NCBI GenBank assembly: GCA_004431415.1
Contig: QPMI01000571.1
Coordinates: forward strand, 79,293-143,292
DNA length: 64,000 bases
Direction of reading: 5' to 3'
Source: Cyanophora paradoxa CCMP329
Taxonomy: Eukaryota > Plantae > Glaucophyta
Part shown: in pieces, positions 9,397 to 61,369 of the stretch
How positions within the stretch are numbered: the first letter of the stretch is position 1
Layout of the letters: each line of letters begins with the position of its first letter
Notes under the pieces: model-generated
What the model was told of the DNA's origin: nothing
What the model saw: the letters and a program-made list of their open reading frames with translations, nothing else
Databases searched by the model: none
Program-made: the position numbers and the translations under genes

Positions 9397-12300
9397 CTAA
9401 GATATCGAGCACGCCTTCGAGCCCCCGGCCCCGCCCCCCGCCGCTGCCGCAGCCCGGAGCTCCTCGGCTCTCCTGCGCGCCCGCGCGAGCCGCTCCCGCC
9501 GCTCCGCAGCCGCCCGCTCCAGCGCGGGTATGTCAGAAGCCGCCGGAAGCTGCCCAGCGGCCGCTCCAGGGGCCGCGCGCTGCCCGGCGCCGGTTAGAGA
9601 AGTCGAGGGACGGGACACGCATACGCGGGGCCGCGCACCCCAGCTGATGCCGGGCGGGGCGCCGCCGCCGCCGCCGCCGAGGCCGCTGCCGATGCCGCCA
9701 GGCTCGGCAGGGACTGCACAAGTGCCTCCAAGTTCTGCGGGCGGAGTCAGAGCCGGCGCCGAAGGAGCGGGCACCGGTCGCCAAGCGGGCGGAGGCGCGG
9801 CGCGGGGCGGGCCGATAGGAGGGCCACGTTGCCCTTCGTGATGTAGACGTAGGGCTCCGCGTCCGGGAACAGGCCCTCCAGCACCTGTACGGGGGTACCG
9901 AGTTAGAGTTAGGGGGGTAGAGCGCCCGCTAGACCGGCCGGGGTACGCGCCTGCAGTTCCGAGACCACCACGGGCTTGAGCGGCCGCTTGTTCAGCTCCG
10001 CCAGCTGCCGCGCGGATCAGGAGGGTACCGCGAGGGGCGGAGGGTACGCGCGCCTGGAAGCGGTCCCGGAGAAGAGGGTCCGCGAGGGCGGCGGGGGAGA
10101 GGAGGGGTACGAACGCCGCGCACTGCCGCCGGCCGCGTCAGGCGGGGGGATGAAAGAAACTGGGGGGTATCCGTCCCGAACCTTGACGACGGCTTGTGTG
10201 CCCTCGTCGCCGCTGGCGGCGCCGCCGGCGGACTGCGGGCGCTGGGCGCCGCCGCCGGAGCACTCGAGCCAGCAGCGGCGGCCGCGGTGGGCCAGGCCCC
10301 GCACGAACTGGCCCGCGAAGGCCGCGTCCTGCCCCCGCGCTCCTTCAGAGAGGAGAAGCTTAAGGCGCGGGCTCGAGTGCTGCGGGGCGCGGACCGCGGC
10401 GTGGCACCAGACGAAGAGGAAGGGGGCGGGGTCCGCCAGGGCGCAGCGGGCCCCCGGCGAGGCGAGGAGCGCCGCCGCCGCCTGCGCGAGGGCCTCCTGC
10501 TGGCCCGCGGCGCTTGTCCCGCCGGCGCCGCCCGTGGCGAGGCGCTGGGCGAGGGTGAGGGCGAAGGGCGGCAGGCCCGACGCGAAGAGGGCGTCCCTGC
10601 AGGCGGCGGCGTCAGTTTCGGCGCCGGGGAGGGCGACCCGCGGTGCCTCTGGCGCCGGCGCCGGCTCCGGCGACGCACGTGGAGAGATCTCTGCAGAGCC
10701 GCGGGCGGGCGTCAGGAAGCAGCGGCGCGGGGCGGGGCGGGGCGGAGCGGGTCGGGCGAGGGAGGGCGAAAGGGCGCACGCAAACTGCTGCTTCATGAGC
10801 GCCCCCTTCGCGTGCGAGCGTTGTCAGGAGGTGTGTGCGTGTGTGCGGGGCGAAGGAAGCTTTTAAGGAAGGGGGAGGCGGACCTGCAGCTGGTCGTCGA
10901 GGGCGCACTTCTCGCGCCAGACGGGGTACACGGGCCTCCCCAGGCGCCGGGCGGCAGCCAGCTGCGCCCGGCACCGCGCCGAGGCCGCCCCCGCCGCGCT
11001 GCGCGGCCCCGCCGGCTCAGCGACCGCCGGGTACCCCCCTGAAGCTGAAGAGGGGTACCTGACGACGAAGATGAGGGCCTGGGCCTTGCGGAGGCCGGCC
11101 GCCTCCTGCGAAGCGAACGAAGTCGTCGGCGGCAGATGCGAACGAAGTGATCGGAGCGGAGGGGGCGCACGTCGGCCTCCGTGGCGTCGTCCAGCGCGCA
11201 CTGCGGGGCGAATCCTCAGAACGGGCAAGCGGGTCTATTTATAGAACGGAATTTGATCCGCACGGTGACGTGGGCGGCCTCGAGGCCCTGGAGGAGCCGC
11301 CGGGCGAACGAAGCGTCCTCGGGCGCGTGCCTGCGCGCGGAGGCTGGGGCTCGGGGGGTACACGAGAGAGACAGGGCGGGGTACGCACGAGAAGAAGGCG
11401 TCGCGGAGGCCGCCCGCCCGCTTCAGCGCGGCCTGCGGGGGGCACCGGGGCGTCACGGGGGTACGCTGGAAAGGCGTTAAGGGGTACGCCGGACCTGGAA
11501 GGTGACGTCGGGGTGGGCCTGGACCACCATCCTGCGGCGAGAACGTGAGAGGGGGGGGGGGGACGGCGGGGCTGGCGCGGGGTACAGCGCACTTGCGGTT
11601 CGGCCCCTGCCCGATCGTCCGGGCCGGGTCGGCGCCTGCGCGGGGCCCTCGGCGATGGCGAAGCCATCAAAAATGAGCTCAAAAAGGAGAGGCGTACCCC
11701 GCTGCATGAGGCGGACGCAGACGTCGAGCATGGCGGGGCCGTGCGAGACGGCGTTGAGGAGCGGCGTCCGCTCCTTCCCGTCCGCCGCGCTGCGCCGCGC
11801 GCTCAGGGGAGGCGGAGGGAGGGGCGGGGCGGGGCGGGGCGGGGCGGGGCCGCACTCGAGGGCGGAGGCGGGGGCGGCCTCTGCGAGGCGCAGCGCCGCG
11901 AGGCGGAATCCGTGCCTGCAGCGGCGCCTCAGGCTCGAAACGAACGCTCGCGCGGGCGAGCAGCGTCGGGCTCGCCGGCAGGCGGCGTGGAGCGCGGTCT
12001 CGCCCTCCTCGGGGGCCGCGCCCTGGGCCCCCTCGGGGTCCTCCTCGCCCCCGTCGTCCTCCTCCCCGCTCAGGCGCATGTTGCGGCCCCGGAACTTGCG
12101 CAGCTGAGCGCCGGCCTCAGTTTGAGGTGCGCATCCAAAGGGGTAAAGGTTCGGACCGCGAGGCGACCCTCGAGGGAGAGGACGCGGAGGGCGCCGTTGA
12201 CGAGGGCCCGCATGGCGCCGCCCCGCGGGCCCGAGGCCGCCCCCAGCGCCGGCGCGAAGTCCCCCGTCCAGAAGGTCCCCTCGCAGTGCAGCGCCAGGTC

Positions 12301-15300
12301 CAGGCACGCCCTTCGGGGGGCAAGTTCAACGTTCGGACGGGACGGGGTTGGAAAGGGGCGCCGCGGGGATTCGAACCGGAGCTCCTCGAGGAGGCCGTCC
12401 TTCGCCACCCCCGCGGCCGCCTTCAGGAACCTGCGCGGGCCTTCAGGGGGTACAGGTGCGGACGGCACCGATTCGGATCGCCGCGTACCCCCCCGCCTTG
12501 CCGTAGAGCCGCGGGTCGCGGTGAAGGTTGCGGTGCATGCTGAGCTCCTTGGCCCGCTGCGGTACCCCCCGCAGGACGGGGGGCCGGGGCAGCCCGCCTT
12601 TGCTGTACGCCTCCGTCTCGAGGCGGATCAGGTGCCTGTGAGAGAGTGAGAGGGGTGGGGGCGCGAGGGCGGGGCGGGGCGCGCGATCGGATGGAGACGG
12701 AGCGGGCGGCGCCGAGGGGCGGCATGCCCTCCTCGTTCTGCGCGTCCAGCGAGGCCCCCGCCTGGAGCAGCGCATCCACAAGCAGCGCGCTCCCCTCGTA
12801 GTGCCCGCACGCCCTGCCCCGCCACCCGGCTCAGCCCCGGCCCGGGCGGAAGAGGGGGTTACCGGAAAGAAAGAACGCACTCGTGGAGTGGCTCGCCGCC
12901 CGGCGGCGCGTTTGCGCTGTTTCGCTTCCGCACACAGTCCACCTTGGCGCCGCTGGGTACGCGCATCAAATCTCGAGACGAAGAAGAGCGAAGATAATTC
13001 AGCGGGGGGTACCGTTGGAGGAGAAGGCGAACGGTCGCCAGATCCTCCTCCTTTTTCGCGCCGCCGGCGGTCAGGACCGCCCACGCCAGGGGGGTACCCA
13101 GGTCCAGGACCTCCATGTTCACGTCCGCGCCCTGCCGGGGCCCTTTTCAGAAAGGAAAGGGTAGGAGAGGGGGGTACGGCACCTTGTCGAGGAGCAGCTG
13201 GACGATGGGGAGGGGCCGGGCCTTGCAGTACATCCGGTCCGAGTACCCCGTCCCTGAAGATGGATTCCTTCAGAGGAGGCTGGAGGGGTACGTCTAGTCC
13301 GGGTGTGCAAGGGGGTACCGCACCGTCGTACGGTCCGCAGCCGCAGGCAAGGTGCAGGGGTGAGCCCCAGTAAATCGCCTCGTTGGGATCCGCCCCCGCG
13401 TCCAAAAGCACCCTTGGGGGGGGGGGGGGGGGGGGGGGATGAGCGGCCGGGGTACGGGTCCCTAGTAGGCAGCGGCGCACCGGATGGTCTCGTCGTCGCA
13501 TTTGTAGAGGAACGCCTGCGGGAAAACGGGCGTCTGGTGGGTTCGAACCCGCGCACGGGGAGGGGGCGGGCCTGGGCGAGGAGGCCGTCCGTGGGGGCCC
13601 CCGCGGCCAGCAGCTCCTTCATCGCCGCCGGGTTCCGCAGCGCCGTCTGCGTCGGCGGCCTGCGAACGAAGTCGGTCGGCCGGCGGGGTACAGGCCGGTC
13701 CGGTTCGAGTCTCGTACCCCGGGGCGTCCGAGGCGTCGTCGCCCTCGTTGCGGGGGCAGTTGCCCAGGTCCGGCTTCCGCTCAAGGATTGCCCTGCCCGG
13801 GATCGGACCGGGGTGGGGCGGGGCGGGACGGGGCGGGGCGGGGCGGGGCGGGGCGCACCGGACAACGGCCCCGGAGCTCGAACGCGAGGCGAGGTTCAGG
13901 GCCTGCGGGGGGGGACCGGTTTCTCTTAGAAAAAACCGAAAGGGGTAGGGCGGGATAGAGCGGGGCGGGGGGTACGCGCGCGCCTGCCAGGCGCCCTTGT
14001 TGGCGGCGTGGACGGAGGCGCCGCGGGCCAGCAGCTCGAGGACGACCGCGTCGGGGGCGCCGTGGCTCAGGGCCGCCAGCAGGGGCGTGTTCCCCCGGTC
14101 CCCGTCCTTTGCCTCCAGGTCCGCCCCGGCATCCAGAAGGACCCTGGCCGTGGAGGGGGATGAAGGGGGAAGGGGGGTAGAGGCGCTGAAGGGGGGTACC
14201 GGACGGTCTCGAGGACGTCGCTCTCGAGGAGTGCGCGCGCCGCCGCGTGCAGCGGCTCGTCCCCCTCGGGGGGAGAGCCCCGCCCGAGGCCCAGGACCTC
14301 CCTGTACCCCCCGCCCCGTCGGGCTCCCGCTGTGGCGGAGGGCGAGGGGGGGGCCGGCGGGGGGGTACGCACTTGTCGCAGGAGGCGGCGAGGTGGAGGG
14401 GGGTAAAGCCGGCGCCGGCGCCCCCGACGGGCTTGGAGGGCAGCGAGGGGGGTACGCCCATCTCCAGGAGGGCCCGCACGCAGGCGGGTCGCGCCGACCC
14501 GGCCGCCGCGTGAATTGCGGCGCGGCCCCCCCGCGCGCCCCGCTGCGGACCGGCGTGAGCGGCCTTAGGAGCTGCGCGGCGCCCGCCCCGCCCCGCCCCG
14601 CCCTGCCCCGCGCCACGCGCCTGGTTCCGATTGTTCTGCTGCTTGGGGGCCGCCTTATCGGCCCTGAGCGGCGCCACGAGGCTCACCCCGAGCGCCGCGA
14701 GGACCCTGCCGGCGAACACGCGGTCAGCGAGGCGGCGACTGCGGGCGCGGGAAGGAGGAAGAGGGCGGGAAAGGGGGCCGCCCGCACTTAAGGACGTCGA
14801 CGTGGCCCTCGGAGGCGGCGAGGAGCGCGGCGTAGGGCCCGCGGCCCGCCACGTCGGCGCCCCTCTTCGCGAGCAGCTGGACGCACGCCGCGTGGCCCCG
14901 CTCCGCCGCGAGTTCCAGGGCCGATGCCTGCCCTCGCCGCGTCAGGGACAGGGGGGGTGGAGGAGACAGAGGGGGGGAGCGGGTGCGCGCCGGCTCGAGC
15001 TCGGAGCGCTCGCGGGAGATGACGCCCCGCGCGTTGGCGTCGGCGCCGCGGTCGAGGAGGAGCTCGATGACCTCGGCGTGGCCCCCCGCCGCCGCCTCCA
15101 GCAGGCTCGGCCACGGCCCGTCCGAGCCGCGGCCCCGATCCTCGTCTTCGCCCTCGCGATCGGCCGGCGGCTCCCCGTCCCGGGCGCCGGCCCCGCGATC
15201 CAGGAGGTACCTACAACGCGTGGCGTCACGGTGAATCGGGGCGGTACCCCCCCACGGGGCGCCCGCACCGGACGGCCTCGAGGTGGCCGTAGCGGGCGGC

Positions 15301-16681
15301 GAGGTTCAGGGGCGTCCCGAGCTGCCTCGCGAGGACCCGCACCGGCTCCTTGCGCTCCTCCACGAGGAACCGGAGCACCTCCAGGCGGCCCGCCCCCGCC
15401 GCCCCGTGCAGCGGCAGCGGTCGTTTCGAGACGAGGAGGCCCCCTGGGCCTTCCTTCGGGGCCTCCTCCTCCTCCTCCTCCTCCTCCTCCTCGCCCTCTG
15501 CCCTCGGAGGCTTCTTCGGCTTGCGCTCAAGGAGGTACCTGCGAGGCCGCGGCGCTCGGGAACGGGTTGGGACGGGGCGGGAGGAAGGGCACCGGACGAG
15601 CTCGACGCTGCCGCTCTCGGCGGCGCAGAAGGCGGCGACATGGGCGAGTGGGTGGTAGGCGCCCGCGAAAATCACCGTGTCGCGCTCGTGCTGCGGGCAG
15701 CTCCACGCCCCCTTCTTCCTGCGCTCATCCTCATCTTCCGCCGCCGGAAGCGGCGCCGGCCACGAGTCCAGGAGTAGCCTGCCGGGGCCGGGGCGGGGCG
15801 GGGCGGGCGGGGCGAGCGTGAGGGCCGGTCCGGGGGGGGCAAGACCGTGGGGGCGCCGGGGCCCGGACCGGGTGAGGACGAGGCTGCCGGCGCGGGCGGC
15901 GGCGAGGACGACTCCGGCGTAGCTCCGCGTCGGCCACGCGGCCTGCGAGCGGTACGGCAGCTCGTCATCGAAGCCCTGCCGCCCCGCCAGCAGCCTCCTA
16001 CCGCCGCCCGCGCCCGCGCCCGTCAGCCGCGCCGCCCGCGGCGCCGGCGAAGCCGCGGCGGCGCTCGGCCGCACTTGAGCGCGTCGGCGTCCCCCGTGCT
16101 GGCCGCCTTGTACAGCGCGCACGGCTCGGCGCCGTAGTCGGTGGGCGGCGCCCCGCGGCCGATGAGCAGCCTGCGGGGGCGCGCGCGGGGAAAGCTGAGT
16201 AATCGCAACTCAGGTTTTCTGAGAGATCTCACCTAAGAACTGCCGCGTGCCCGCCGCTGGCTGCGTGCCAGAGCGGCGTGCGGCCGGCCGAGTCTGGAGC
16301 GGTGATGAGGAAGCGCGACTGAGCCCCGCGGTCCAGCAGGAGGCTGCGGAGACAAGGAGCTTAAGTTCGACGTGCAGGCAGCTCGTTAAAGCGCTCAAGG
16401 CGAGTGCAAAGGCCGCGGCTCGCGCTGGCCGCGGGATATCGATCCGGACAAGTCGCACCGGCAGGCATCCACGTCGCCGATAGACGCAGCGTACGCGAGC
16501 GGCTGCACGAGCAGCCGGGCGTCAGACTGCGGCGGCCGTGCGGGGATGCTGAAGGCCGGGTGCGCACGGTTTTGCCGTCGGACGCACGCGCGACGTGCGG
16601 GTCCTTCTGAAGATCGGCACCCTCTGCATACTTGCTCCAGAACGCCGCCAGGCCGCCCTGGGAGCCGAAGCTCGCTCCCAT
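9397..16681 (-). CDS. Ankyrin repeat - TIR - TIR - coiled coil - CaaX protein (paralog A; TIR1 has Gln at the catalytic Glu position)
   Basis: Start MGASFGSQ. ANK motifs: DGKT|PLAYAASIGDVDACR, GRTPLWHAASGGHAAVLR, GTPLNLAARYGHLEAVR, GFTPLHLAASCD, GNTPLLAALSHG, WGSPLHLACG, GETALHAACR. TIR1: DAFFS...EDASFARRLLQGLEAAHVT...LRKAQALIFVV...SARCRAQLAAARRLGRPVYPVW. TIR2: QDAAFAGQFVRGLAHRGRRCWL...CAAFVPLLSPAALADPLLRDRFQ...KRPLKPVVV. Ends LERAAAERRERLARARRRAEEL...SKACSIS*. Confidence 0.85.
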
Positions 16682-16796
16682 GACCTTCCCGAAATTTGAT
16701 CGGAGGCTCGCTTACGGTGTCGGCGGTGTCGCTTGAGCCGGGATACGGATAATTCGGGCGCGGACTGTCCAGGCCCGCACGCGCGCGGCCCAGCAG
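16682..16796. promoter_or_regulatory. Putative bidirectional promoter / shared 5' region of the divergent ANK-TIR pair
   Basis: Only 115 bp separate the minus-strand ATG (16681) from the plus-strand ATG (16797). Confidence 0.6.
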
Positions 16797-19700
16797 ATGG
16801 CTGGAGAGATGGACCAGGATGCGGCCGACGAGGCGCTTATCTTGGCCGCTGCTGCCGGGGACGTTCGCTCGATAAGGTGCGCCCGCCTGCGCTTGCGAAT
16901 GCGTGCGCTTACAGCCGCCGCCGAGCTCGGGCGTGTCTAGTGCATAGAGATGAGCTCACGTGCTTTGCAGAGACCTCCTCTCGCGGGGGGCTTCCCCGAA
17001 CGCGTTTTCGAGGCGGCCGCTGAAGCGAGCGGACGGCAAGGCGATCCCTGTTGGCCGTTCCGCGCTGCATGAGGCGGCGCAAGTCGGGCATGTAGAAGCG
17101 CTGCGGTATGCCCGCTTGCGGCCGCCGCGCGGGATCTCTTCAAGTTCTGCGCAGGCGCTGACTTTTGATCTTTCTCCGCTTGCAGCACGCTGCTCGACGC
17201 GCCGCACGCCGACGCGAACTCGCGCTACATCGCCGGCCCCGATCAGTCTCGGGACCCGGGCCCCGCGCCGCTAGACATGGCGGCGGCGGCGAACCGCCCG
17301 GCGGCCGTGCAGCTCCTGCTCGACCGCGGCGCCGACGGGCTGCAGGGTGCCCTTTTCGGCGCCGTACGGGCCAATTCCGACACGGGGGACGCCGTGCGGT
17401 ACGCTTCGGAGGCCCTCGCTGCGCCCGCGGGCCGCCGACGAACACGCGGGCGGGCGCAGGTTGCTGCTCGAGCGCGGGGCGAAGGCGGGAGAGAGGGAGT
17501 TAAGCTATGCTGCACAGGCGGGGAATGCGGGGGCCCTCCGGTGCGGTCGGCCCGCCCCGCCCCGCCCCATCGCCGCCGCCGCCGCCTCACGGAGGTCTAA
17601 CGGGCGCAGGGCGGTCCTGGGAGCGATGCCGGCGGGCGAGGCGCGAACGAAGGCGATCGAATCCTGCGGCTTCTCGGCGGCCCGCGGCGGCAGCGGCGAG
17701 GTCGTACGGCGCGCCGTACCCCCCCTTTCCCCCCCCCCCCTCCGCCTGCCCGCCCCCCTCCGCCTGCCCGCCCTCGTCGGTTCAGGCCCTGACCGGCCCT
17801 CCAGACTCCTAGCGGCGGCGGGTATGCCTCCGGAAGGGGAGATCTCCCGGGACGGGTACACGTTCGTGGGGCTCGCCGCCGTCGAAGGGAAGCTCGAGAC
17901 CGTCACGTGCGATCCGCCCCCCGCCCCCCGCCCCCCCCCCCCCCCCCGCCCCGCCCCCCCCCCGTTCCCCCCTCGCGGCTCGCTGGGCCGGGCCGAGCGG
18001 ATACGGGTACGGGCCGCAGGGCTCTCGTGGAGATGGGCGCGAGGATCGCCGGCATCGTCGTACCCGGGGCCAAGGGCGGCCCCCGCCCCGACGTCATCTC
18101 CTGGGCCGCCGAAGGGGGCGATCCCGCCGTGATCCGGTGCGCGCCGGACCGGCGGTCCCATAAACTTAGCACGCCGGCCCAGCTGAGCGCCGGGCCGATC
18201 AGGTACCTCCTCTCGCGCGGGGCGGACCTGGAGGCGCGGGACGGGGAGGGGATGACCCCGCTCCTGAAGGCGGCCGCCTGCGGGCACGGCCCCGCCGTCG
18301 AGGCCCTCGCCGATGCCGGCGCCGACGTCGCCGCCCGCGAGACGGGGCCCTACGGGGCGCCCCTGCCCGAGGGCCGGGCGGCCCGCGGCGTGCCGGACTT
18401 GGCCCCGGCGCTCTCGCACCCCGGCGTCCTGCGGCTCCTGGGGGCCCGCGGCATCCCCTACGACCTCGCCGCGCAGGAGTCCGTCTTCGTCCGGGGCGCC
18501 TTCCCGATCGTCCGCCAGAAGGCCCGCCCGCGTGCCCTCACTTAAGCTTCGAGTCTTAAGCTTTTAGCTAAATCTTCAACTGAGCTGTACGGCAGTTGAT
18601 GCGGACGCCGCTGGGGCACGCCGCCAAGCGCGGGGACGCCGAAGCCGTCCGGTGCGCCCCGCCCCCGCCTCCCGACCCCTTCATCTTCGCCTCGCCTCCG
18701 GTCCCGCTTCATCCGCGCTCAGGGCGCTGCTGGCGGCGGGGGCGGACCCGAACGTCCCCGCGACGCTCATCCAGTGGAGCATGCGCCGCGAGGAGTCTCA
18801 GTGCGCTCGCCTCGTCCCGGCGCCCGTTAGTCCCTTTAGTTTCGACCGAATCGGGTGCTATGAGCTTCCGGATGCCAATGCCCCAACCCCTTCTGGCCCG
18901 CCGTGGGGAGGCTCACGCGCGCCGCTGATACGGGCCGGGGGCGCAGGCACCCGTCCTCTACCCCCCTCCACGACGCAGCCAGCGACGGCTTCTCCGACGT
19001 CGTTCGGTGCGCCGTACCCCCTCTCCCGCTGCCCCCGCCCGCCCGCCGGCGAGCGAGCGTGCGGGCGCTGCCGCAGGCTGCTGGTGGCGGGCGGGGCGGA
19101 CATGGCGGCGCGCCACGCGGGCAGGCGGCCCCTGGAAGCCGCCATCGCCGCGGGCCGCACCGACGCCGCCCGGTGCCTTCCTCCCGCTCCCGCCCTCCTC
19201 CTAGCCTTTTTTATCACATCTAACCGCCCTCTAATCTAAACGCGCTTGCTACCAGGGCGCTCCTGGAGCTCGGCTGCCCCGTGGACGACGCGGCATACGC
19301 GGCGGAGGAGGAGGGGCAGAGGGCGCCCGAGGCCGCGCTGCCCCTCGCCGCCGAGCGCGGCGACCTCGAGCTCGTCCGGTGCGCAGTCTCCCTCTGAAGA
19401 GGCCGGGGCGCCATCTCTCTTTCTAGCCTGTCTTTCTGTCTGTCTGAGCTGCTGGGGCCAGGGAGCTGCTGGCGCGGGGCGCCTCGCCGGGGGCGCGGCA
19501 CGGGCACAAGGCGGGGCCCTACGAGCTGGCCGCCCTGGGCGGCCACTTCGAAGTCCTCCGGTAAATCTTTGGGCCGCCTCTCTCTCTCTCTTTCTGAGGG
19601 GAGGCGGGCGGGCGGGCAGGGAGTTGGTGGCGAGGGCGGCGCCCCCCGCGGAGGTCGTCGAGGGCATCGCGGCGGGCGCCGCGCGCGAGGGCTCGGCCGC

Positions 19701-22700
19701 CTGCCTCCGCGTCGCCCTGGACGCCGGCGCCGACCCGCGGCGGCGCGTGAAGGAGAACAGCGCGTGGCTCACGCCGCTGCTGATGGCGGCGGGCAACGGG
19801 CACCTCGGCTGCGTGCGGGAGCTGCTGGAGAGGGGGGCGGACCCCGGCGAGGTCGAGGGGGTGCCCCCGCCCAGGCGCACGCCGGAGCAGGAGGAGGAGG
19901 ACGAGGCGGAGGGGCGGCCGCCCCCGCCCGAGTACGTGCTGGCGGGCTACTCGGCGCTGGAGCGGGCGGCGCGGGGCGGCCACGCGGCGGTGGTCCGCCT
20001 CCTCGCCTCGCGCGGGGCGCCCGTCGACCGCCCGGACTCCGGCCTCAACAGCGCCCTCGGTCAGTGCCCGGCCCCCTGCGCCCCCGGCCCGGCCCTCGAA
20101 CCGACGTCGGCGTCGACCCCCAATCTGGGCAGGCCTCGCGGCGAAGGAGGGGCGCCTGGAGGCCGTGCGGGCCCTCCTGCAGTGCGGGGCCGACCCCGCG
20201 AACCCGAAGGCGCGTACACGTACCCCCCTCGCGATCGGCGGCGCGCAGACCGCCCTGACGCGCGCGGACCGGTACCCCGGCAGGCCCTGAAAGCAAGCGG
20301 CGTGCTGGACTCGGCGTGGTGCCCCGCCCTGCACGCCGCCGCGTTCAACTTCGACATACCCTCCGTCCGGTGCGCCGTCCGAGCCGTCTTTGCCGCCTGA
20401 GCGTCCGAGCCGCCGTCTGACCCGAGAGAGAAGGGCGCTGCTGGAGGCGGGGGCGCCGATAAACCAGGCGGACGCGTCGAACCGGACGCCCATCATGCGG
20501 CCGCTCGCCTCGAGCGCCCGCGAGAAGGAGCCTCTGATGCTCAAGACCCTGCAGTGCTTTGATTTGTCTAGATCTCCTCTTGTTATCGTTAGTCTCGTTC
20601 CTCTTTGTTCGTTCGGCCCACGCCGCCCTCGCAGGGAGCTTCTGCGGGCGGGGGCCGACCCCTTCTACGGCTGGCAGGACAAGTGCACCATCGAGCAGAA
20701 CCTCCTCTACCAGGTTCGAGCCCCGTCGGGGCCCCTTTCTCTTCGTTCTCACCCGGCCGCAGGTCTCGGGCATGTACACGAAAAACCGCCTCACCATCCT
20801 CGCGTGCGTACCCGTACCCCCTCCCACCCCCTCCCCTGCCTTTCGCGCCATACCCAGGCCTGCATCACCGTACCCAGGGCGCTGGAGGAGGCGGGGCTGC
20901 GGCTGCCGACGCGGCACCCCGCCGTGGCTCAGGCGCTCGCCTTCGCACTCGCGCGCGGCGTCTACTCCGTCGCCAGGTCCGCGTACCCCTCCCCAGCCCC
21001 GCCTTCGCCTCGCTTGAGCTTCCGACGCCTTCCGCGCAGGTGGTTCCTGGAGCGAAAGGTCGACACGAACCTCGCGTACCTCTCTGACGAGGAGCGCGGC
21101 GGGCCCCACATCCGAGCGCGCCCCGGGCCCCTCCCCACTTTTAGATGAGATTCTGAGATTCTGCGGGGCAGGGCGAGACGCTCCTGCACAAGCTCCTGAT
21201 GGGCCGGCGCGAGCACGGCGAGTCCGCGGAGGACTTCGACGCCTGCCTCCGGTGCGCGCCCCGCCGGCCGGCCCGCTCGCTGGCCTGGCCTGCCCGGGCC
21301 TTGGGCGACGTCGACCGGCGCCTGCGCCTGCAGGCTGATCCTCGACAACGGGGCGGACGTCAACGAGTACTGCGAGGGCTCCTCCCGTGCGCACGCGCGC
21401 GCGCCCCGCCCTCACGCCTCTGCGCGGCTTGAGCACGCCGCCGCCTCCGCAGCGCTGCACCTTGCGGCGGGCAACGCGGAGGCGGGGGCCGAGACCGTCC
21501 GGTGCGCCCTTCCCTTGCGTCGCGCCCGTCGGTTCTTCTGCGTGCATCCGCCCCTCACGCCCCTCTCGCAGCTTCCTGATCGAGCGGGGCGCGGCGCTGG
21601 AGGCGAAGGACGCGGAGAATGACGAGGAGGGGAGGGGCCGCGGCCGCGGCCGGGGCGAGGCCCGCGGGCGGACGCCGCTGCTCGTCGCCGTCGCCGCGAG
21701 CAAGGGCGAGGATGGCCTCGAGACGGTCCGGGCGCTGCTCGACGCCGGCGCCGACATCGGCGCGCGCGACGCGGAGGGCCGGAGCGCCGCGGCGATCGCG
21801 GCGGCGGCCGCCGACCTCGAGCTGCTGCGGCTGCTGATGGGCCGCGGGGCCGGGCGCCACGCGCACGAGGGCGAGATCGTCGCTGCCGCCTGCGGCTCGG
21901 GCGGCGGCGGGCGGTACCGCCGCGGCCCCGAGACCCGCGACATCCTCGGGTGTGCCCTAGGCCTGTTCTCATCCCGTCCCGTACCCCTCTGAAACCCTCC
22001 CCCGGCCCCAGGGTCCTGCTGGAGGACGAGCTGAAGGAGGTCTCGGCGGAGGGCTTCGCCTGGCCCGCCGTCCGCCGCGACGCCGACGGCAGCCTCTCCG
22101 GCCGCGCCAAAGGGTGCCCGCCGCCCTGGCCCCCACGCTTTGCGCCCTCTCTGAAGCTCGCGGCGGGAAGGTACTCGACGGCGCTGGGGGAGGCGATGCG
22201 GGACGGGTCCGAGATGGCGGCCGAGGACGCCCGCCAGTGGGCCGACCTCCTCCTCTGCTGCCGCGGCCCGATACGCCTCAGGCGAGCGCGCAGGAAAGCT
22301 AGAGGGTGCCGCTGGCTGACGGCGCCGCAGCGAGATCCACGCGCTGAAGCCGGAGGAGACGGGCGGGGACGCGCGGGGGCCGCTGGTGGCGGCGGCGGCG
22401 CGCGTGCTGCGGCTCGAGGGCCGCGTCGAGCCGGAGCCGCCCGAGGACCCCAAGAAGAAGACGAAGAAGAAAGCAAAGTGCGCCCTCGCTTCGGTTCCTG
22501 TCATTGCCGGCGTACGCTGAGCGGGCCCGTGCCGGGCGGGCGGGGCTGCAGGGGCCAGGAGGACGAGGAGGAGGAGGCGGAGCAGGAGGACCCCGCCGAG
22601 GCGGACGCGCGGGACCGGGAGACGCCGCTGCACGCCGCCTGCCGCGTCGGCCTCCGCCTCACGGCCCTCCGCCTCGCCGCCGCCGCCACCCCGGAGACCG

Positions 22701-25533
22701 TCGAGTGCGCTATGTGTATAGCTCAGGCTAGTCTAACTAACTGAACCTCTCTCGCCCAACTTAGACCAGCCTACCTAGCTTAGGCTAGGCCAACCGGACC
22801 TCTCGCCCAACTTGGCCTCGCTGGGCCCCCCGCGCAGCGCGGTGGACGCGGCGGAGGAGACGGCCCTCTCGCGGGCCGTCGCCTTCGGGCCCGCCCTCTT
22901 CGACGTCTGCGCCCTCCTCCTCCAGAAGGGCGCGCGAGCCCCGCTTCTCGAAATTATTTGATATCGCCTTTCTTTCGCTGGATCTGAGCGGCTCCGCTGC
23001 TGCTGCGCAGGGGCGGACATCGGGCGGCAGGTCGGCGGGGCCGACGGCGGGAAGCAGCGGTGCGCCCCGAGACCTCTACTGCTAGGAACGAGCCCAAGAA
23101 ATCCCTCCTCAACGGCTCCGGCAGGGCTGTGCTGGACGGGACGCGGGACGCGGCGTACCGCGCGCAGCTGAAGCGCGCCGCCGCCGTCCGCGACGCCTTC
23201 ATCTCGTGCGTATCCCCCTCTCATTTCCCTCCCCCTCCGCTTTTCCTTCTCTTCCTGAGCCCCCGCCCGCGCTGCGCGCGCGCAGGTACGGGCACCACCC
23301 GCCGGAGGTGGCGCGGTTCACGGCGCAGCTGAGGGACCGCCTCCAGGCCGAGCAGGTCTCGGTCCGTCCTCCTTCCGCTTTCTCTTCCGCCGTCCCCTCG
23401 CCCCGTCTCCCCACTCGACTCGGCCTCACTCCGCCCCGCACGCGCCCCCCGCGACCCTCGCCCCCGCAGTGCTGGGTGCGCCTTTGTTTCAATCCGCTCC
23501 TCCGCCCCCGTTCCGAGGCTGACGCGCGCTGCCCGCCGCCAGATGGACGAAATGAAGGCGACGGGTACGCGATGCGATTCGCAGTTGGCTTCGCCCCTGA
23601 CCTCGAGTTCGCTCCGCCCCGCGGCCGGCAGGCATCGAGGCCGGAACGGAGGCGCGCGCCCCGGCGCCTCCGCAACGCCCTCTAAGGCGCCCCTGAAAGC
23701 CGCGCGCAGTGGCGGGAGCAGATCGGGGCGGGGATCAAGGCGGCCCGCGCCGTCCTCTTCGTCGCCTCCAAGGCGGGCGCCGCGCCGCGCCCCCTCCCCC
23801 GCCTCTTCCGCTTCTGATCGCAGCGCCCTCCTCCCGCAGCACTCGTGCGCGTCGGACTGGTGCATGCTCGAGCTCTCCCGCGCCCGCGGTGCGCCCTCCC
23901 TGCGGCCTGGACCTCTTCGTTCTCAGCGCCCCCAGACCTGGGGCGACCGATCTTCCCCGTGTGGGCCGAGGCGCCCTTCCCCCTCGACGACCGCCCCGCC
24001 GTGCGCGTGTACCCCCTCCCCGCCGCCCCTCCTCACAGTACCCCCCGCAGGGCCTCCTCCGCGGCTGCCGCATCGTCGACCTCTCGCGGTGCCCCCGCCC
24101 CGCCCGGCCCAATCCAAGCCTCCCCGGCCTGAGCGCCGCCCCGGTCCGGCGCAGGCCGGCGCTGCTGGAGGCGGGCTTCCCCGCCTTCCTCGCGGAGGTG
24201 CGGGGCGCCCTCGAGGCCGCCGCCGCCGCCGACGACGCCGCCGACGCCGACGCCGCCCGGGCCCGCCCCTCACCCCTCACCTTCCCCGCTCTTCCCTCCT
24301 CATTTCTGAGCCGTGCGCAGGCGCTGCTGGCGCGGCCCGAGGCGCGCTGCGACCCCCGGCGGGCCCCCTTCCTGCTCGCCTGGGCCCTGCCCGAGGACGC
24401 CCGCAACGCCGCCTCCCTCCTCTCTGCCCTCGCCTTCCGCGGCGTGCCCTGTTGGCTCCACTGCCCTGTACCCACACCCCCCGTCCTCCCCCACCCACCC
24501 TCGCATCTTCCCTCACAGCCGCGCAGGGCGCGGACCCGACGGGAGAGGCGGGGGCGGACGCTGCGCTGGCGGCGTGCGCGGCCTTCGTGCCGCTCCTCTC
24601 GCCCGCCTCCGCCTCCTCCCCCCTCCTCCGCGACCGCCTCCAGGCCCGCCCGCCCCTGCGCTCGGCCTTTCTGTCGCCTCACTGTGCCCCCGCTTCGCAG
24701 CGCGCGCGGGCGGCGGGGCGGCCCGTCCGGCCCCTCCTCCTCTCCAGCCTCCAGGCGAGCGCGCCCCCCGCCCCGCCCCGTCTGAAGCTTAGGCCGCCCC
24801 GCCGGACAGGTGCCGGCGTCGCTCGAGTACTCGCTGGCGCGAACGCGCAAGTTCCCCTTCTTCGCCGAAGAGCCCGAGGGCTTCTTCCCGGTGCCGTACC
24901 CCCGCCTTCCTCCCCCCCCCCCCCCCCCCCTTCATCTTCTTCCGACCTCGCCGGCAGTCCCTCGACGCGCTGCTCTCGTCCCTGGGGGCACCGGCCCCCG
25001 CCGCCCCGGTCCGCCCGCCCCGCCCCGCCCGGCCCTCCCTACAAGCCTCTCGCCCTGCAGCTGACGCCCCGCCGCGGCGCAGGCGAAGCCAGAGGGTCCG
25101 CCCGCGCTGCACGCCCCCGCCACGTCGGCTGGAGGCGCCGCCCCGTCGGCCCTGGACGCGGTGCGCCCACAGGCGCCGCCCGCCGCGCGCAGGGCTCACG
25201 CGGCGCAGGCGCGGGCGGGGGTGCTGCAGGCGGAGATCGCCGGCAGCGACCGCGAGCTCGAGCAGGCGCGCGCCCCCCCGCCGGCCCCGCCGCGGGGCCC
25301 CGCCCCTCTCCCTAAGCGAGAGAGATCGCGCGCAGCTGGAGCGGGAGATCGCGGAGCTGGAGGCGGCCGCCGCCCGCGGCTCGCGGCGGGGGAAGAGGGG
25401 CAAGGGCTCGAGTTCGAAGGCCGCCCCGCCGCCCCTGCCGGCGCCCCCGCCCCTGGACCCCCCCGGGGCCGCCCCGGCCGCCCCGCCCCGCAAGAGGGAC
25501 CACGGCAAGAGCGGCGCCTGCTCCCTGATGTGA
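16797..25533 (+). CDS. Ankyrin repeat - TIR - TIR - coiled coil - CaaX protein (paralog B; TIR1 retains the catalytic Glu)
   Basis: MAGEMDQDAADEALILAAAAGDVRSIR|DLLSRGASPN...GRSALHEAAQVGHVEALR. Many ANK repeats (GMTPLLKAAACGHGPAVEAL, LTPLLMAAGNGHLGCVRELL, GRTPLLVAV, RETPLHAACR). TIR1: DAFIS|YGHHPPEVARFTAQLRDRLQAEQVS|CW|MDE...WREQIGAGIKAARAVLFVASK|HSCASDWCMLELSRAR|LGRPIFPVW (Glu codon 23870-23872). TIR2: ...GVPCWL...CAAFVPLLSPASASSPLLRDRLQ|RARAAGRPVRPLLL. Tail LQAEIAGSDRELEQ|LEREIAELEA...GKSGACSLM* (TGA 25531-25533). Confidence 0.88.
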
Positions 25534-26037
25534 GGGCTCGCGCGCGGTCGGACCCGCCGCGGGTTCTACTGTTATACGATTTATTGTAATTACGGATACG
25601 TATTGCACACGTACGAATTATATTCACGCTTCAAATTAAATGGGGCTCTGGTGGCCGCGCCGTACCCATATCCCCGGCCAGTCCCTCGGCTTGCAGTGCC
25701 TCTGGCGGCAGTGCCCGCTCCGGCGGTGCCCCCTTCGCGGCCGGCCACTCTGTCTCTCCTGTACCCGCCATCCCGCCGCCCCCGCGCCCCGGCGCATGCC
25801 CCAGCCCCGCATGCGCAGCCGTCTGACCCGTCGTGGAGTCGCACGCCGACGCCGCCGGCGTTAGTGCACGCCTCGACCGACGAGGCGGCCCAGGCATGCG
25901 CACCTCCAGAACATGAAATGCGCCAGTCCTTTCATATGCATAGTGACGTCTTCGCTCCCACACGCACACTTTTCATTTCTTTCCTTTCCCGGTTGAAAAG
26001 GCAAATCAACGAAAAATCAACGGCCTTTGTTGAACAA

Positions 26038-30599: not shown

Positions 30600-31008
30600 A
30601 CCCGGACTCCCGGAGTCGCGGTGGGCGCAAGCGCCGCCCGCCGCGCGCCTGTCCGAAAGGGCTCACAAGGGGCCGTTGTCCGGCGCAGGCGCGGGCGGGG
30701 CGCTGCAGGCGGAGATCGCCGGCAGCGACCGCGAGCTCGAGCAGGCGCGCGCGCGCGCCCGCCGGCCCCGCCGCGGGCCCCCGCCCCCTCTTCCTGAGCG
30801 AGAGAGATCGCGCGCAGCTGGAGCGGGAGATTGCGGAGCTGGAGGCGGCCGCCGCCCGCGGCTCGCGGCGGGGAAGAGGGGCAAGGGCTCGAGGGCCGTC
30901 CCGCCGCCCCTGCCGGCGCCCCCGCCCCTGGACCCCCCCGGGGCCGCCCCCGCCGCCCCGCCCCGCAAGAGGGACCACGGCAAGAGCGGCGCCTGCTCCC
31001 TCATGTGA
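30600..31008 (+). pseudogene. Orphan copy of the last exons (coiled coil + CaaX) of ANK-TIR paralog B
   Basis: Closely matches ~25160-25533, including the GC-AG intron. Encodes LQAEIAGSDRELEQ|LEREIAELEAAAARG...KRDHGKSGACSLM* (stop 31006-31008). Confidence 0.85.
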
Positions 31009-31392
31009 GGCGCTGTTACAGGATTTACTAAAATATTTGGTGGCGTGGGGGGGCGGCCGGGGGGCGGCCATAAGAAAAATTAATTGAAAAATGCACAAGG
31101 GCCCTAAGAACCGCCGGCCGTGTTTTGGGGGCGGCCATAAGAAGAATCAATTGAGAAATGCATAAGAGAAATGAGTTGAGAAATGCGGGCTTTTTGGCGC
31201 GTGCGGGAAGCTACAGAATTCCGGGTCTCGGGAGAGGGGCGCCGGCGGGCGCTGCCTCGGGCCCTCTGCCGGGCCAGCCCTGCTGCCAAGATCTATAGCT
31301 AGAACGCCCGGCGGGCCCTCTGAGCCCGGTCCGCCAGGCCGAGCCCTGCAGCTGTGCGGCCCCGGGCCAGCCCTGCAGCTGTGCGGCCCCGG

Positions 31393-31674
31393 TGTCGGAT
31401 GGGAAGATTCCCACCCGATTAGGCACCCGCGCAGTACTGCGCGGGGCCGGCTCCCTGTGCTGGAGCAGCTGTAGATGCAGGCTGGTGTATTCACTGTGTA
31501 CCCGGAAGACTACTGACTCTGTACCCCTAAGACAGGTAGAGGCAGGCCAGCGTAGGCTACCGAGAGGTAAGCCTACAGGAAGAGAGACTATGCTAAGCCA
31601 CTCAGGTTACGTCAGGCACCAACTAGCTCTAGTCACTAAGTCACCGCAAGGCCGGGGAATCGAGCCAGGCGACA
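31393..31674 (-). repeat. LTR (3' LTR in minus orientation)
   Basis: tgtcggatgggaagattccc...gagccaggcgaca, 282 bp. Confidence 0.9.
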
Positions 31675-39346: not shown

Positions 39347-40330
39347 TTTACGCCTCGCTTCATTCGAATGCAGAAGACCTAGCTATCTTACGCCTGACAC
39401 TACTTAGCTAGATGCACGGGATAGCGCATCGGGTTGGGCCCTGAGGTACGGCAGCTCAAGGCTGCTTTCCCGGGAACCACGTATCATAATACGTTGGCGA
39501 TCGACCAGGGCGGATCGCCGTATGCCATTCCGGCCTCGCCCTTGCGAGTTCCGGAACAAGAACTCTCCGGGGTAAGCGTGCTAGGCGCTTGTACCCCGGG
39601 GAGGGCCGTTGCGGGTCGAGACGGTGTACCCCGCTCGGGGTACTCCGCTCGGGGCCGTCGCGGGGCCGATCGGGGTACCCCGCTCGGGGGTACACTTGAT
39701 CGGGGCCGCTCTGACGCCGTACCCCTCTCCGGGGTACGCGTTCGGCCTCGGGCCGCGCCTTGTGGGGCCGGTTGGGGCGAACGGCGTACCCCGGGGAGGG
39801 GTACGCGGTTTCTTCCGGGTTCGGGGATCCGAAGCCGGGTACCGCCGCCGGAGGCCGCGGGGGTGAGCGTAGCGAACGCAGCACGAATGCAGTACCCCCT
39901 ACCAAACAAGAGTCAGGTCACAGCCAGCCAGAATAGCATACATAAGGACAAAAGTGATCAAGAGGGCGAGGGTTGATCCACCCTCCTCCTGCCCCCCCCC
40001 CCCCCCTTTCCTCCCCCCCCGCCCCCCCAACGTGTCTCGGACGCTGAGCCCCTATCCCCAGCGCACTGCGCTGTAGGAGGACGGGCAGAGAGCGTGAATT
40101 CGGACAACAACATGGGGCCGGGGCGGGCCAAGAAGCCCGAGGGAACGAGCCGGCACAGAAGGCTGGGGGGTTCTCGTCGTACCCCTATGGGACAGTCGAC
40201 GAACCGGGGCGGCGCTTGATAGTTGCGCCGCCAGATCCCCGCCGCCGACAAGTCATGCTGGGCGGTGCGGGCCAGGGGCGCGCTACGGGTGGAGGGCGGG
40301 CAAGGCGGTCGCACTGCGCGTCGGCGTGAA
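39347..40330. mobile_element. ~1-kb repeat head preceding the 139-bp array (copy 1)
   Basis: Highly similar to 61370-62390, with a sharp shared boundary at tttacgcctcgcttcattcgaatgcagaagacc. Contains a GTACCCC/GGGGTAC hairpin cluster. Confidence 0.8.
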
Positions 40331-43300
40331 GTCGCGCGAGGCCGTTACGGACCTCGGGGCCGCGGCGGAATCTAAAACCATCCCAGCCGGTGAGCACCGA
40401 AAGTGAGCCCACCACCGTCCTGCCCTGTGCAAGCAGGTTAGGCGGCGGAAGCGCGCCGCGCGGAGGCGTGGGGGCCGCATAAGACCGCGGGAGCAGTCGC
40501 GGGGCCTCAGGGCCTGGAGCGCCCGTGGGACAGCACCGTGGGCGAGCCAGCGGTCAGCCCACCCTGCGCCAGCAGGCGAGGCGGCGGCAGCGCGGGGCCG
40601 CGCGAGGCCGTGACGGACCCGGGGCGGTGATGGGGCCATGAGCTCCAGCAGGAGAGCGCGGCTGGCGAGCCAGGGGCCGGCCCGCCCTGCGCCAGCAGGT
40701 CGGGCGGAGGCGGCGGGTCGAGCGGCGGCGCGGGGCCGCGCGAGGTCGTGACGGACCTCGGGGCCGCGAAGGAGCCTTGAGCTCCAGCAGGGGGGCGACG
40801 CGGGCGAGCCAGAGGCCGGCCCGCCCTGCGCAAGCAGGCGAGGCGGCGGCGGCGAGCCGAGCGGCAGTGCGGGGCCGTGCGAGGTCGCTGCAGACCTCGG
40901 GGCGGTGGTGGAGGCTTGAGCTCCAGCAGGAGAGCGCTGCTGGCGAGCCAGCGACCGGCCTGCCCCTTCGCGAGTAGGTCCGACGGCGGTAGCGGGTCGA
41001 GCGGCCGCGCGGGGCCGCGCAAGGCCGCTACGGACCTTCGGGCGGCGGCGGAGCTTTTAGCTACCGCAGGAGGCGCTGCGCGCGGTCCACCAGCCGGCCC
41101 GCCCTGGGGGCGGTGGCGGAGCCTTGAGCTCCAGCCAGGAAGCGTCCGACGGCCGCGGGCGGGCTAGGGGCCGGCCCGCCCTGTGCCAGCCAATCAGGCG
41201 GAGGCAGCGAGCTGGGCGGCGGCGCCGGGCCGCGCGAGGTCGCTGCAGACCTCGGGGAGGTGGCGGAGCCTTGAGCTCCAGCAGGAGCGCGGTGGGCGGG
41301 CCAGCGGCCGGCCCGCCTGCACCCGTAGGTCAGGCGGCGGCGGCAAGCCGGGTGGTGGAGTGGGGCCGTGCGAGGCCGTCAAGGGCTTCGGGGCGGCGGT
41401 GGAGCCTTGGGCTCCAGCCGGAGAGCGCGGCGGACGAGCCAGCGGCCGCCCGCCCTGCGCCAGCGGGTCAGGCAGTGGCGGTACGCCGAGCTGCAGCGCG
41501 GGGCCGCGCGAGGCCGTGACGGACCTCGGGGTAGCGGTGGAGCCCTGGGCTCCAGCTGGAGAGCGCGGCATGCGAGCCAGCGGCCGGCCCGCCCTGCGCA
41601 AGCAGGTCAGGCGGCGGCGGCGGGTCGAGCAGCGGCGCGGGGCCGCGCAAGGCCGTGACGGACCTCGGGGCGGGGCGGGCCCTGGGCTCCAGCCGGAGAG
41701 CGCCGCAGGCGAGCCAGCGGTCGGCCCGCCCTGCGCAAGCCGGTCAGGCGGCGGCGGCGGGGGCGCGGCGGTGCGGGGCCGCGCGAGGTCGTTTTCGGAC
41801 CTCGGGCGGAGGTGGAGCCCTGGGCTCCAGCCGGGGGCGCTGTATGCGAGCCAGCGGCCGGCCCGTCCTGCGCAAGCAGGTTATGCGGCGGCGGCGGTCG
41901 AGTGGTGGTGCAGGGCCGCATGAGGCCGTGAACGGACCTCGGGGCGGAGGTGGAGCCCAAGGGCTCCAGCCGGAGAGCGCGGCAGGCGAGCCAGCGGCCG
42001 GCCCGCCCTGCGCAGGCAGGTCAGGCAGTGGCGGTACGCCGAGCTGCAGCGCGGGGCCGCGCTAGGCCGTGACGGACCTCGGGGCGGCGGTGGAGACCAA
42101 GGCTCCGGCCGGGGAGGGCTGCATGCGAGCCAGCGGCCGGCCCGCCCTGCGCAAGCAGGTTATGCGGCGGCGGCGGGTCGAGCGGCAGCGCGGGGCCGCG
42201 CTAGGCCGTGACGGACCTCGGGGCGGAGGTGGAGCCCTGGACTCCAGTTGGGGAGCGCTGCATGCGAGCCAGAGGCCGGCCCGCCCTGTGCAAGCAGGTT
42301 ATGCGGCGGCGGCGGGTCGAGCAGCAGCGCGGGGCTGCGCGAGGCCGTGATGGACCTCGGGGCGGAGGTGGAGCCCTGGGCTCCAGCCGGAGAGCGCGGC
42401 AGGCGAGCCAGCGGCCGGCCTGCCCTGCGCAAGCAGGTCAGGCGGCAGCGGTGTGTCGAGCGGCGGCGCGGGGTCGCGCGAGGCCGCTTCAGACCTCGGG
42501 GTGGAGGTGGGGCCCAAGGGCTCCAACCGGCGAATGTCGCAGGCGAGCCAGCGGTCGGCCCGCCCTGCGCAAGCAGGTCAGGCGGCGGCGGCGTGTCGAG
42601 CGGCAGCGCGGGGCCTCGCGAAGCCGTGACGTACCTCGGGGCGGAGGTGGAGCCCTGGGCTCCAGCCGTGAAGCGCTGCATACGAGCCAGCGGCCGGCCC
42701 GCCCTGCGCAAGCAGGGTATGCGGCGGCGGCGGGTCGAGCGGCAGCGCGGGGTCGGGCGAGGCCGTGACGGACCTCTGGGCGGTGGTAACGCCTTGAGCT
42801 CCAGCCGGGGGGCGCTGCGGACGAGCCAGCGGCCGGCCCGCCCTGCGCAGGCAGGTTATGCGGCGGCGGCGTGTCGAGCGGCAGCACAGGGGAGCGCGAG
42901 GCCGTGGCGGACCTCGGGGCGGTGGTGGAGCCCTGGGCTCCAGCCGGGGAGCGCTGCATGCGCACCAGCGGCCGGCCCTGCGCAGGCAGGTTCTGGGGCG
43001 GCGGCGGGTCGAGCAGCAGCGCGGGGCCGCGCGAGGCCGTGACGGACCTCGGGGCGGAAGTGTGGCCCTGGGCTCCAGCCGGGGAGCGCTGCATGCGCAC
43101 CAGCGGCCCGCCCTGCGCAAGCAGGTCAGGCGGCAGTGGCATGTCGAGCAGCAGCGCGGGGCCGCGCGAAGCCGTGACGGACCTCGGGGCGGAAGTGGGG
43201 CCCTGGGCTCCAGCCGGGGAGTGCTGCATGCGAGCCAGCGGCCGGCCCGCCCTGCGCAAGCAGGTTACGCGGCGGCGGCGGGTGGCGCGGCGGTGCGGGG

Positions 43301-46300: not shown

Positions 46301-47075
46301 GCCGGCCCGCCCTGCGCAAGCAGATCAGGCTGCGGCGGCGGGTCGAGCGGCGGCGCGGGGCCGCGCGAGGCCGTGACGGACCTCGGGGCGGAGGCGGAGC
46401 CCTGGGCTCCAGCCGGAGAGCGCCGCAGGCGAGCCAGCGGTCGGCCCGCCCTGCGCAAGCAGGTCAGGCGGCGGCGGCGGGTGGCGCGGGGGGGCGGGGC
46501 CGTGCGAGGTCGTTTTCGGACCTCGGGGCGGAGGTGGAGCCCTGGGCTCCAGCCGGGGAGCGTCGCAGGCGCGCCAGCGGTCGGCCCGCCCTGTGCAAGC
46601 AGGTCAGGCGGCGGTGCCACGGTGGCGGGTCGAGCGGCGGCACGGGCCGCGCGAGGCCGTGACGGACCTCGGGGCGGAGGTGGAGACCAAGGCTCCAGCC
46701 GGAGAGCGCGGCAGGCGAGCCAGCGGCCGGCCCGCCCTGCGTAAGCAGGTCAGGCGGCGGCGGCGGGTCGAGCGGCGGCGCGGGTGCCGCGCGAGGCCGT
46801 GACGGACCTCGGGACGGAGGCGGAGCCCTGGCTCAGCGGCTCCAGCCGGGGAGCGCTGCGTGCGAGCCAGCGGCCGGCCCGCCCCGCGCAAGCAGGTCAG
46901 GCGGCGGCGGCGGGTGGCGTGGCGGTGCGGGGCCGCGCGAGGTCGTTTTCGGACCTCGGGACGGAGGTGGAGCCCTGGGCTCCAGCCGGGGAGTGCCGCA
47001 GGCGGGCCAGCGGCCGGCCCGCCCTGCGCAGGCAGGTCCGGCGGCGGCGGCGAGCCGAGCTGCGGTGCGGGGGCC
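40330..47075. repeat. GC-rich tandem array, ~139-141-bp unit, roughly 48 copies
   Basis: Anchor gaggccgtgacggacctcgg recurs at about 45242, 45381, 45520, 45660, 45801 and 45940. Confidence 0.95.
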
Positions 47076-47689
47076 CGGGTTGCGCAAGGGTGCGGCGCGG
47101 ATGCGCGGAAGGTCGCCAGCAGGCCGACTCGCAGCGAGATCTAGAGCGCAAGCGGGGACCGTAGTCCGCAGCGTAACGCGCCACTGGGGCAGCGGCAGCA
47201 CTGCGGTAGCGGAAGCGCCAGCCTGGCAACTGCAGCTGCGGGCGCCGGCCGACTCGAGCTCGCACTGCGGCACTGCGGCTGTACTGCCACTGCAGACTGC
47301 GCATGCCGTGCGGCGCCGCAGCGGCGGCACTGCGGCAGCGGATCCCCCGGAAGTGCCCGCCTCAGCGGCCTGGCACTGCGGCAGTGAGACCGCGCGGCGC
47401 GGGACCGGTACCGCGGGTCCGGCGGCTCCGGAGTCCGGAGTCCGGCCGGTACAACGGGTACGTCCGTTGTTTTGTTTTTGTTTGTTTTGTTTTTGTTTTT
47501 GTTTTAAGGTCGAGTCAATCCTTGAATCGACTAGAATTGACCAAAAACAAACAAAACACTCTGCGATCGCGATCGATCGCGAGGCTGTAGCGGTCGCGCC
47601 AGCAGCGCTAGCGCTAGCGGCTAGTCCGCAGCGAGCTCGAGACGCGCCAGCGGGCCGACTAATACTCGCAGCGTGCGCGCCAGCGAGAG

Positions 47690-59351: not shown

Positions 59352-59633
59352 TGTCGGATGGGAAGATTCCCACCCGATTAGGCACCCGCGCAGTACTGCG
59401 CGGGGCCGGCTCCCTGTGCTGGAGCAGCTGTAGATGCAGGCTGGTGTATTCACTGTGTACCCGGAAGACTACTGACTCTGTACCCCTAAGACAGGTAGAG
59501 GCAGGCCAGCGTAGGCTACCGAGAGGTAAGCCTACAGGAAGAGAGACTATGCTAAGCCACTCAGGTTACGTCAGGCACCAACTAGCTCTAGTCACTAAGT
59601 CACCGCAAGGCCGGGGAATCGAGCCAAGCGACA
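59352..59633 (-). repeat. LTR (5' LTR in minus orientation)
   Basis: tgtcggatgggaagattccc...gagccaagcgaca, 282 bp. One visible mismatch to the other LTR. Confidence 0.9.
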
Positions 59634-61350: not shown

Positions 61351-61369
61351 CAATTGCGGTACATATGCA

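Follow-up and report, generated by a model that had tools for sequence, protein, structure and literature searches.

The locus raises the question of whether two neighboring TIR genes of the glaucophyte Cyanophora paradoxa encode an enzyme and its catalytically dead partner. It lies in a window of 64,000 nucleotides (contig QPMI01000571.1; all positions refer to this stretch), whose DNA is GC-rich and eukaryotic, the introns being about 65 nt long. Two genes are arranged head to head. Gene A (9397..16681, minus strand) was modelled with 44 exons and 1477 amino acids, gene B (16797..25533, plus strand) with 51 exons and 1723 amino acids, and their start codons are separated by a spacer of 115 bp (16682..16796). 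Both genes are transcribed. Spliced RNA contigs of gene A were found in three RNA-type runs from two studies and include two exon joints in the betaA region of its first TIR domain (TIR1) that are absent from a DNA run, and an RNA contig of 2691 nt, which starts at 16738, matches exon 1 of gene B. The 5' ends of the RNA contigs at 16717 (A) and 16738 (B) are about 20 nt apart, although contig ends are not proven transcription starts, and the spacer is probably a shared bidirectional promoter.

Gene A corresponds to the public model tig00021178_g19209.t1 (P0005 in EukProt; 1523 amino acids), which is 96% identical to the gene A model; the public protein seems to retain two in-frame introns (residues 1296-1317 and 465-490) and, relative to the gene A model, to skip eight residues close to the N-terminus. 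GC donors occur in 22 of the 93 modelled introns of both genes, and several exons measure just 6-26 nt. The encoded proteins consist of an ankyrin array followed by two TIR domains. In A both TIRs are of the dead type and are followed by a short coiled-coil-like tail and the CaaX box CSIS (9400..9411, minus strand). In B an active-type TIR1 and a dead-type TIR2 precede a coiled-coil-like tail, a polybasic stretch and the CaaX box CSLM (25519..25530, plus strand). Both boxes were recognized by motif, and both proteins are predicted to be prenylated. Gene A also starts with Met-Gly (16681-16658, minus strand), as does, with Ser at position 6, its paralogue g10180; N-myristoylation of A besides the CaaX box is thus possible. 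A Walker A motif is absent from both proteins, and Pfam analysis of A (P0005) gave ankyrin and TIR_2 matches only, with no NB-ARC or LRR. Local alignment of the spliced models, which were built from coordinates, gave about 31% identity overall, 45% in TIR1 and 43% in TIR2, and 10 intron positions are common to both genes in their C-terminal part. Database searches with gene B were run exon by exon; 1656 of its 1723 amino acids align to ankyrin-TIR relatives.

Several other features accompany the pair. The last two exons of B and the intron between them (25157-25535) recur as an 88% copy at 30617-31010 (plus strand), which ends in CaaX codons, has no TIR exons upstream and reads as an orphan 3' duplicate or an alternative terminal cassette. 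A stretch of 70 bp over a B intron/exon junction (17154-17223) is copied 44 kb away at 61282-61351 with 96% identity. Directly downstream of A, an intron-rich gene (about 8960-5440, minus strand) resembles, as far as can be read from its sequence, an ELMO-domain protein whose long tail is rich in Pro and Ala; one of its exons gave no match in Pfam. Satellite arrays with a 139-bp unit occupy about 40300-47100 and 62300-64000, each preceded by the same 975-bp segment (39347-40300 and 61370-62342, 95% identity). Inverted arms of about 316 bp at 49235-49545 and 52758-53073, 89% complementary and 3.2 kb apart, possibly belong to a DNA transposon with terminal inverted repeats, and a 282-bp repeat occurs at 31393-31674 and 59352-59633 with 99.6% identity.

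The two TIR1 domains differ at the position of the catalytic glutamate. The first-pass annotation had placed a GAG (Glu) codon at 23870-23872 in B and a CAG (Gln) codon at 10964-10962 of the minus strand in A, and both codons were found there within the helix sequences it had described. The putative catalytic Glu of B is E1388 in the model (23870..23872, plus strand), and the Gln of A is Q1165 in the model and Q1189 in g19209 (10962..10964, minus strand), whose TIR1 sequence is the same. The reported absence of the alphaC Trp from A was likewise confirmed: at 10974..10976 (minus strand) CGG (Arg) replaces this residue, which corresponds in the alignment to W204 of AbTir. Between betaC and betaD the TIR1 domains of A and B align over 41 residues without gaps, with 19 identities and a BLOSUM score of +104, whereas shifts of 1-4 residues all gave negative scores and 2-6 identities, so that the zero register alone is positive. 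The Glu/Gln column aligns with E244 of the NAD+ hydrolase TcpC, whose W240 stands opposite the Trp of B and the Arg of A, and weakly with E104 of the oyster TIR-STING 6wt6 (E 0.009). The AlphaFold model of A TIR1 itself was too poor for a fold search (pLDDT 47). For paralogue P0001, which also bears Gln, the model shows a TIR topology in residues 1-90 (pLDDT about 70-86) and places the Gln in helix alphaC (residues 65-77, pLDDT about 82); its fold matches ThsB (Z 10.6), the SARM1 TIR (Z 10.1) and, within the same range, Hydra TRR-2 and TIR-1. The register is that of the sequence alignment and of helix placement in this model.

At 10962-64, DNA run X1 lists no difference from the CAG, although this run and the assembly are not independent of each other; among the listed RNA pieces of A, none visibly covers the codon. 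Since g10180 also carries Gln and the DNA run shows no variant, the CAG does not stem from a sequencing error. In run X17, an RNA contig over the alphaC exon has two synonymous differences (10950 and 10956), none of them at the CAG, and a depth of 18.5 compared to 8.5 for A. It probably represents a second expressed Gln-type paralogue, possibly g10180.

The loss in A extends far beyond this codon. A TIR1 (10679..11402, minus strand) runs from betaA to betaE over seven exons and is clearly a TIR: Pfam TIR_2 (PF13676) matches residues 1127-1228 of P0005 (E 9.6e-14 and 52.4 bits, both for the whole protein, compared to a curated cut-off of 28), and the domain is TIR_2 in the ESM Atlas (0.94). Weak matches to EF-Tu in a PDB sequence search (E 0.03 or worse) were rejected, as Pfam, the ESM Atlas and the fold search all identify a TIR. 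The betaB strand and the BB loop are encoded by a single exon of 30 nt (11171..11200, minus strand), and the segment from betaB to alphaB comprises 18 amino acids compared to 28 in B. The genomic distance is too short for hidden BB-loop exons, and g19209 and g10180 agree with the model, including this exon. In AbTir numbering, A TIR1 lacks equivalents of the betaB Trp, the BB-loop G174, the alphaB R178, W204 and E208, and keeps the betaB Asp and the W227 equivalent, the betaD Trp (10917..10919, minus strand, by alignment), which in AbTir forms the partner-side half of a composite site. In place of the hallmarks of a TIR NADase, A TIR1 has a Gln for the Glu, an Arg for the Trp and a deletion at the BB-loop Gly. 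A His that stands in A where betaA ends, instead of Tyr, was rejected as a mark of lost function, as TcpC and AbTir also have His there. A TIR1 is very likely catalytically dead, and replacing its Gln by Glu alone should not revive activity.

Protein searches retrieved five further A-type genes (g10180, g13848, g587, g21701 and g22379) on five other contigs, so that the family including A is spread over six. With A, the residues at the Glu site are Q, Q, A, H, E and E, and the alphaC Trp is missing from all of these genes. The asymmetry had been described as an exchange of Glu for Gln; the Gln is real, but what distinguishes A is the loss of the whole BB-side pocket, and in two of the six A-type genes, g587 and g22379, the Glu persists although the Trp and the BB loop are gone. 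Both are predicted to be dead, and a classification of TIRs that relied on the Glu alone would get these two wrong. The segment from betaB to alphaB ranges from 10 to 35 amino acids with 37% identity among the six genes, compared to 52-66% elsewhere in TIR1, although the BB-loop lengths in public models other than that of A could include missed microexons. The most conserved TIR1 segment is betaD-alphaE (66%), and the betaD Trp is kept in B TIR1 and in all five aligned A-type TIR1s. The Glu column is tied for the least conserved position between betaC and betaD (identity 0.13 compared to a mean of 0.62), while the neighboring C, R, L, A and R are invariant, the pattern expected of a relaxed catalytic site within a fold that is kept for binding. 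A and g10180 share 86% and 82% identity over the two TIR blocks compared to 43-70% in the ankyrin part, and the GC3 of A TIR1 is 0.97; both observations indicate that A is not decaying and that its TIR region is under strong constraint. Judged by its sequence, A is a constrained pseudo-enzyme. The sample is biased to A-types, as the queries came from A, and these queries retrieved no other B-type gene. In a midpoint-rooted tree of seven proteins only A and g10180 are resolved (93/98), so that B is placed as the outgroup by distance only; on this placement the divergence of A and B would predate the spread of A-type genes over six contigs. No relatives were found in prokaryotic genomes, metagenome contigs or plasmids, and a scan seeded with TcpC gave no further bacterial TIRs.

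B TIR1 (23192..24088, plus strand) was modelled with nine exons, three of which are microexons of 6-22 nt (within 23470-23651); the splicing is modelled, not RNA-confirmed. The domain keeps a betaB W-x-D, a BB-loop E-x-G, the alphaB Arg, the alphaC Glu with a Trp four residues before it, and the betaD Trp, so that equivalents of AbTir G174, R178, W204, E208 and W227 are all present. It is also the TIR of the family closest to TcpC, with a z of 13.5, while A reached 7.8 and the other A-types that were tested 0.4-7.5. Pfam gave no match with single B TIR exons, which are too short. The site of AbTir is composite: one subunit provides the BB loop, alphaB, W204 and E208 and the next subunit W227 and betaE (10.1101/2022.05.07.491051). 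Activity is lost in the variants G174A, S176A, R178A, Y207A and E208A, and cyclization is controlled by W204 (10.1101/2022.05.07.491051). A BB loop is required in both AbTir and SfSTING. B TIR1 departs from AbTir at two of the needed positions, with Glu for S176 and Leu for Y207, and the assignment of its BB loop and alphaB, including the conserved Gly and Arg and the Glu at S176, depends on the three modelled microexons. Taken together, B TIR1 bears the sequence marks expected of an active TIR NADase.

The second TIR domains are of the dead type in both genes, as far as their residues tell. A TIR2 (9708..10430, minus strand) is a pseudo-TIR: Arg (codon from 10062) occupies the Glu position, the betaD Trp is missing, and the TIR_2 match (E 5e-4) lies under the curated cut-off; B TIR2 (24360..24985, plus strand) likewise has Arg (codon from 24635). 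All seven proteins show Arg at this site and no betaD Trp in TIR2. Homologue searches with the B TIR2 exon and an A linker stretch gave no match within the limits of their length window. Thus, of the four TIRs in the pair, one at most looks catalytic.

How far these residues predict activity depends on what is known of other TIRs. The premise of the first-pass annotation, that substitution of the Glu abolishes NADase activity, holds for ThsB and a Chlamydomonas TIR, in which E-to-Q removes activity, but not fully for SARM1, in which E642Q is described as 'attenuated'. In a broad screen, cADPR isomers were formed in E. coli by 25 of 154 Glu-bearing eukaryotic TIRs and by 4 of 29 from unicellular eukaryotes (10.64898/2026.04.20.719644). 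The supplements of this screen do not mention Cyanophora, and no paper on Cyanophora TIR proteins was found in the open-access literature. The division into B as enzymatic executor and A as pseudo-enzyme therefore stands in part: A TIR1 is very likely dead without being a decaying pseudogene and B TIR1 has the NADase hallmarks, but B carries a pseudo-TIR of its own, and a Glu is no guarantee of activity.

Pairs of this kind have been described for land plants. Among Arabidopsis TNL pairs, sensors have lost the Glu and/or the BB loop, although some keep the Glu, and the RRS1 TIR restrains RPS4 (PMC13732033, PMC13725568). Such combinations of an enzyme and a dead TIR are documented for NLRs of land plants, and heteromeric TIR NADases are still presented in a 2026 paper as being without prior example (PMC13732033). 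Like RPS4/RRS1 and CSA1/CHS3, A and B are divergently transcribed, in their case probably from a shared promoter region, and at the level of sequence one TIR is intact and that of the partner degenerate. In contrast to RPS4/RRS1, they lack NB-ARC, LRR and an integrated (decoy) domain and have ankyrin arrays in both proteins; their TIRs are C-terminal and tandem, with a second pseudo-TIR in each protein, are of TIR_2 type (by profile match in A) rather than of the plant clade, and are followed by CaaX anchors. The pair thus resembles plant paired TIR-NLRs and may work like them, but is no member of this group, and an immune role is assumed here by analogy.

Other systems share single traits with the pair. 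TcpC, AbTir and BtTir are matched by the modelled B TIR1 in betaB W-x-D, BB E-x-G, alphaB R, alphaC W-x-x-x-E and betaD P-x-W, and their composite site at the BE interface serves as the mechanism model for A and B (10.1101/2022.05.07.491051). However, these proteins form homo-filaments of single TIRs, have a coiled-coil N-terminus and no known dead partner gene. SARM1 (ARM-SAM-TIR) likewise carries its repeats ahead of a TIR at the C-terminus, which is an NADase, and its fold matches the A-type TIR1 in the P0001 model (Z 10.1). SARM1 is anchored at the membrane. It differs by ARM and SAM instead of ankyrin, a single TIR, a homo-octameric assembly and autoinhibition in cis. The A-type TIR1s and all TIR2s look like the non-catalytic interaction domains of MyD88, MAL and Glu-bearing inactive TIRs, but the A-types lack the conserved BB loop that scaffold filaments use.

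The best explanation, which we put forward tentatively and at slightly less than an even chance, is that A and B are a co-expressed, membrane-anchored pair of enzyme and pseudo-enzyme convergent with RPS4/RRS1, with B as an oligomerization-gated TIR NAD+ hydrolase and A as its partner. Both proteins would be prenylated, A perhaps also myristoylated, and would meet on the membrane. In TIR NADases the active site is shared by two TIRs: the BB loop, alphaB and the Trp and Glu of alphaC come from the first, the betaD Trp and betaE from the second. Only the second half is retained in A TIR1, which could accept the BB loop of B but could not extend the strand. Because it keeps the accepting face and cannot donate a BB loop, it would either cap strands of B, holding B off at rest in the manner of RRS1, or complete one composite site. 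Once the ankyrin arrays sense a ligand, B would be freed to cut NAD+, and the product would probably be of the cADPR type, as the alphaC Trp is kept in B.

The main rival, which we regard as possible though doubtful, holds that the A-types are a separate subfamily of non-enzymatic scaffold or adaptor TIRs independent of B, that B may be an enzyme under the control of the ankyrin array and the pseudo-TIR2 that it carries itself, and that the head-to-head layout combines a relic of inverted duplication with promoter sharing. The adjacency could indeed be such a relic of an old inverted duplication, and with a pseudo-TIR2 in the same chain B might be restrained without A. The A-type clade mixes genes with and without the Glu and has conserved surfaces of its own (alphaD-betaE and TIR2 alphaC-betaD) that are not shared by B, and the betaD Trp may be kept in the A-types for folding alone. 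Full ankyrin arrays are present in both proteins, and some Arabidopsis head-to-head TNLs, such as SADR1, work without their neighbor. However, the very tight divergent arrangement persists at about 31% identity, and A and B carry the same targeting motif, both of which argue against this reading.

It is unlikely that neither protein is enzymatic and that B is a Glu-retaining scaffold, so that the asymmetry has no catalytic meaning. The few positives among Glu-bearing TIRs, the TIRs of IL-1R9, IL-1R10 and TLR2, which have the Glu and no activity, and the two departures of B from AbTir are consistent with this reading; but B keeps six pocket positions together across a divergence in which the A-types lost them, and screens of isolated domains miss oligomerization-gated enzymes. 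Very improbable is a Glu-independent activity of A, either residual NADase or other nucleotide chemistry. SARM1 E642Q is attenuated rather than null, and the alphaC of A is strongly conserved with an invariant Cys-Arg, but the Gln varies among the A-types, and their BB loop, needed in AbTir and SfSTING, is short or of low complexity. That A is a decaying duplicate or the CAG an error, as might be suspected from GAG to CAG and TGG to CGG each being single-base differences, is largely refuted by a frame open over 44 exons, spliced RNA in two studies, the high GC3 of TIR1, and g10180, against which the TIR region is best conserved and which has the same Gln.

A broader reading is conceivable, although we hold it to be rather improbable: the division into executor and pseudo-TIR seen in plant TNL pairs would have evolved independently in glaucophytes, on a prenylated, NLR-free chassis of ankyrin-TIR-TIR type that was duplicated as a two-gene unit, with a dead TIR reduced to the betaD-Trp half by which it caps the enzyme or licenses it. 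If a glaucophyte does have such a working pair in the absence of NB-ARC, this would suggest that pairing arises from the chemistry of TIR assembly, and such a pair would provide a small system in which to ask whether a dead TIR caps an active site or completes it.
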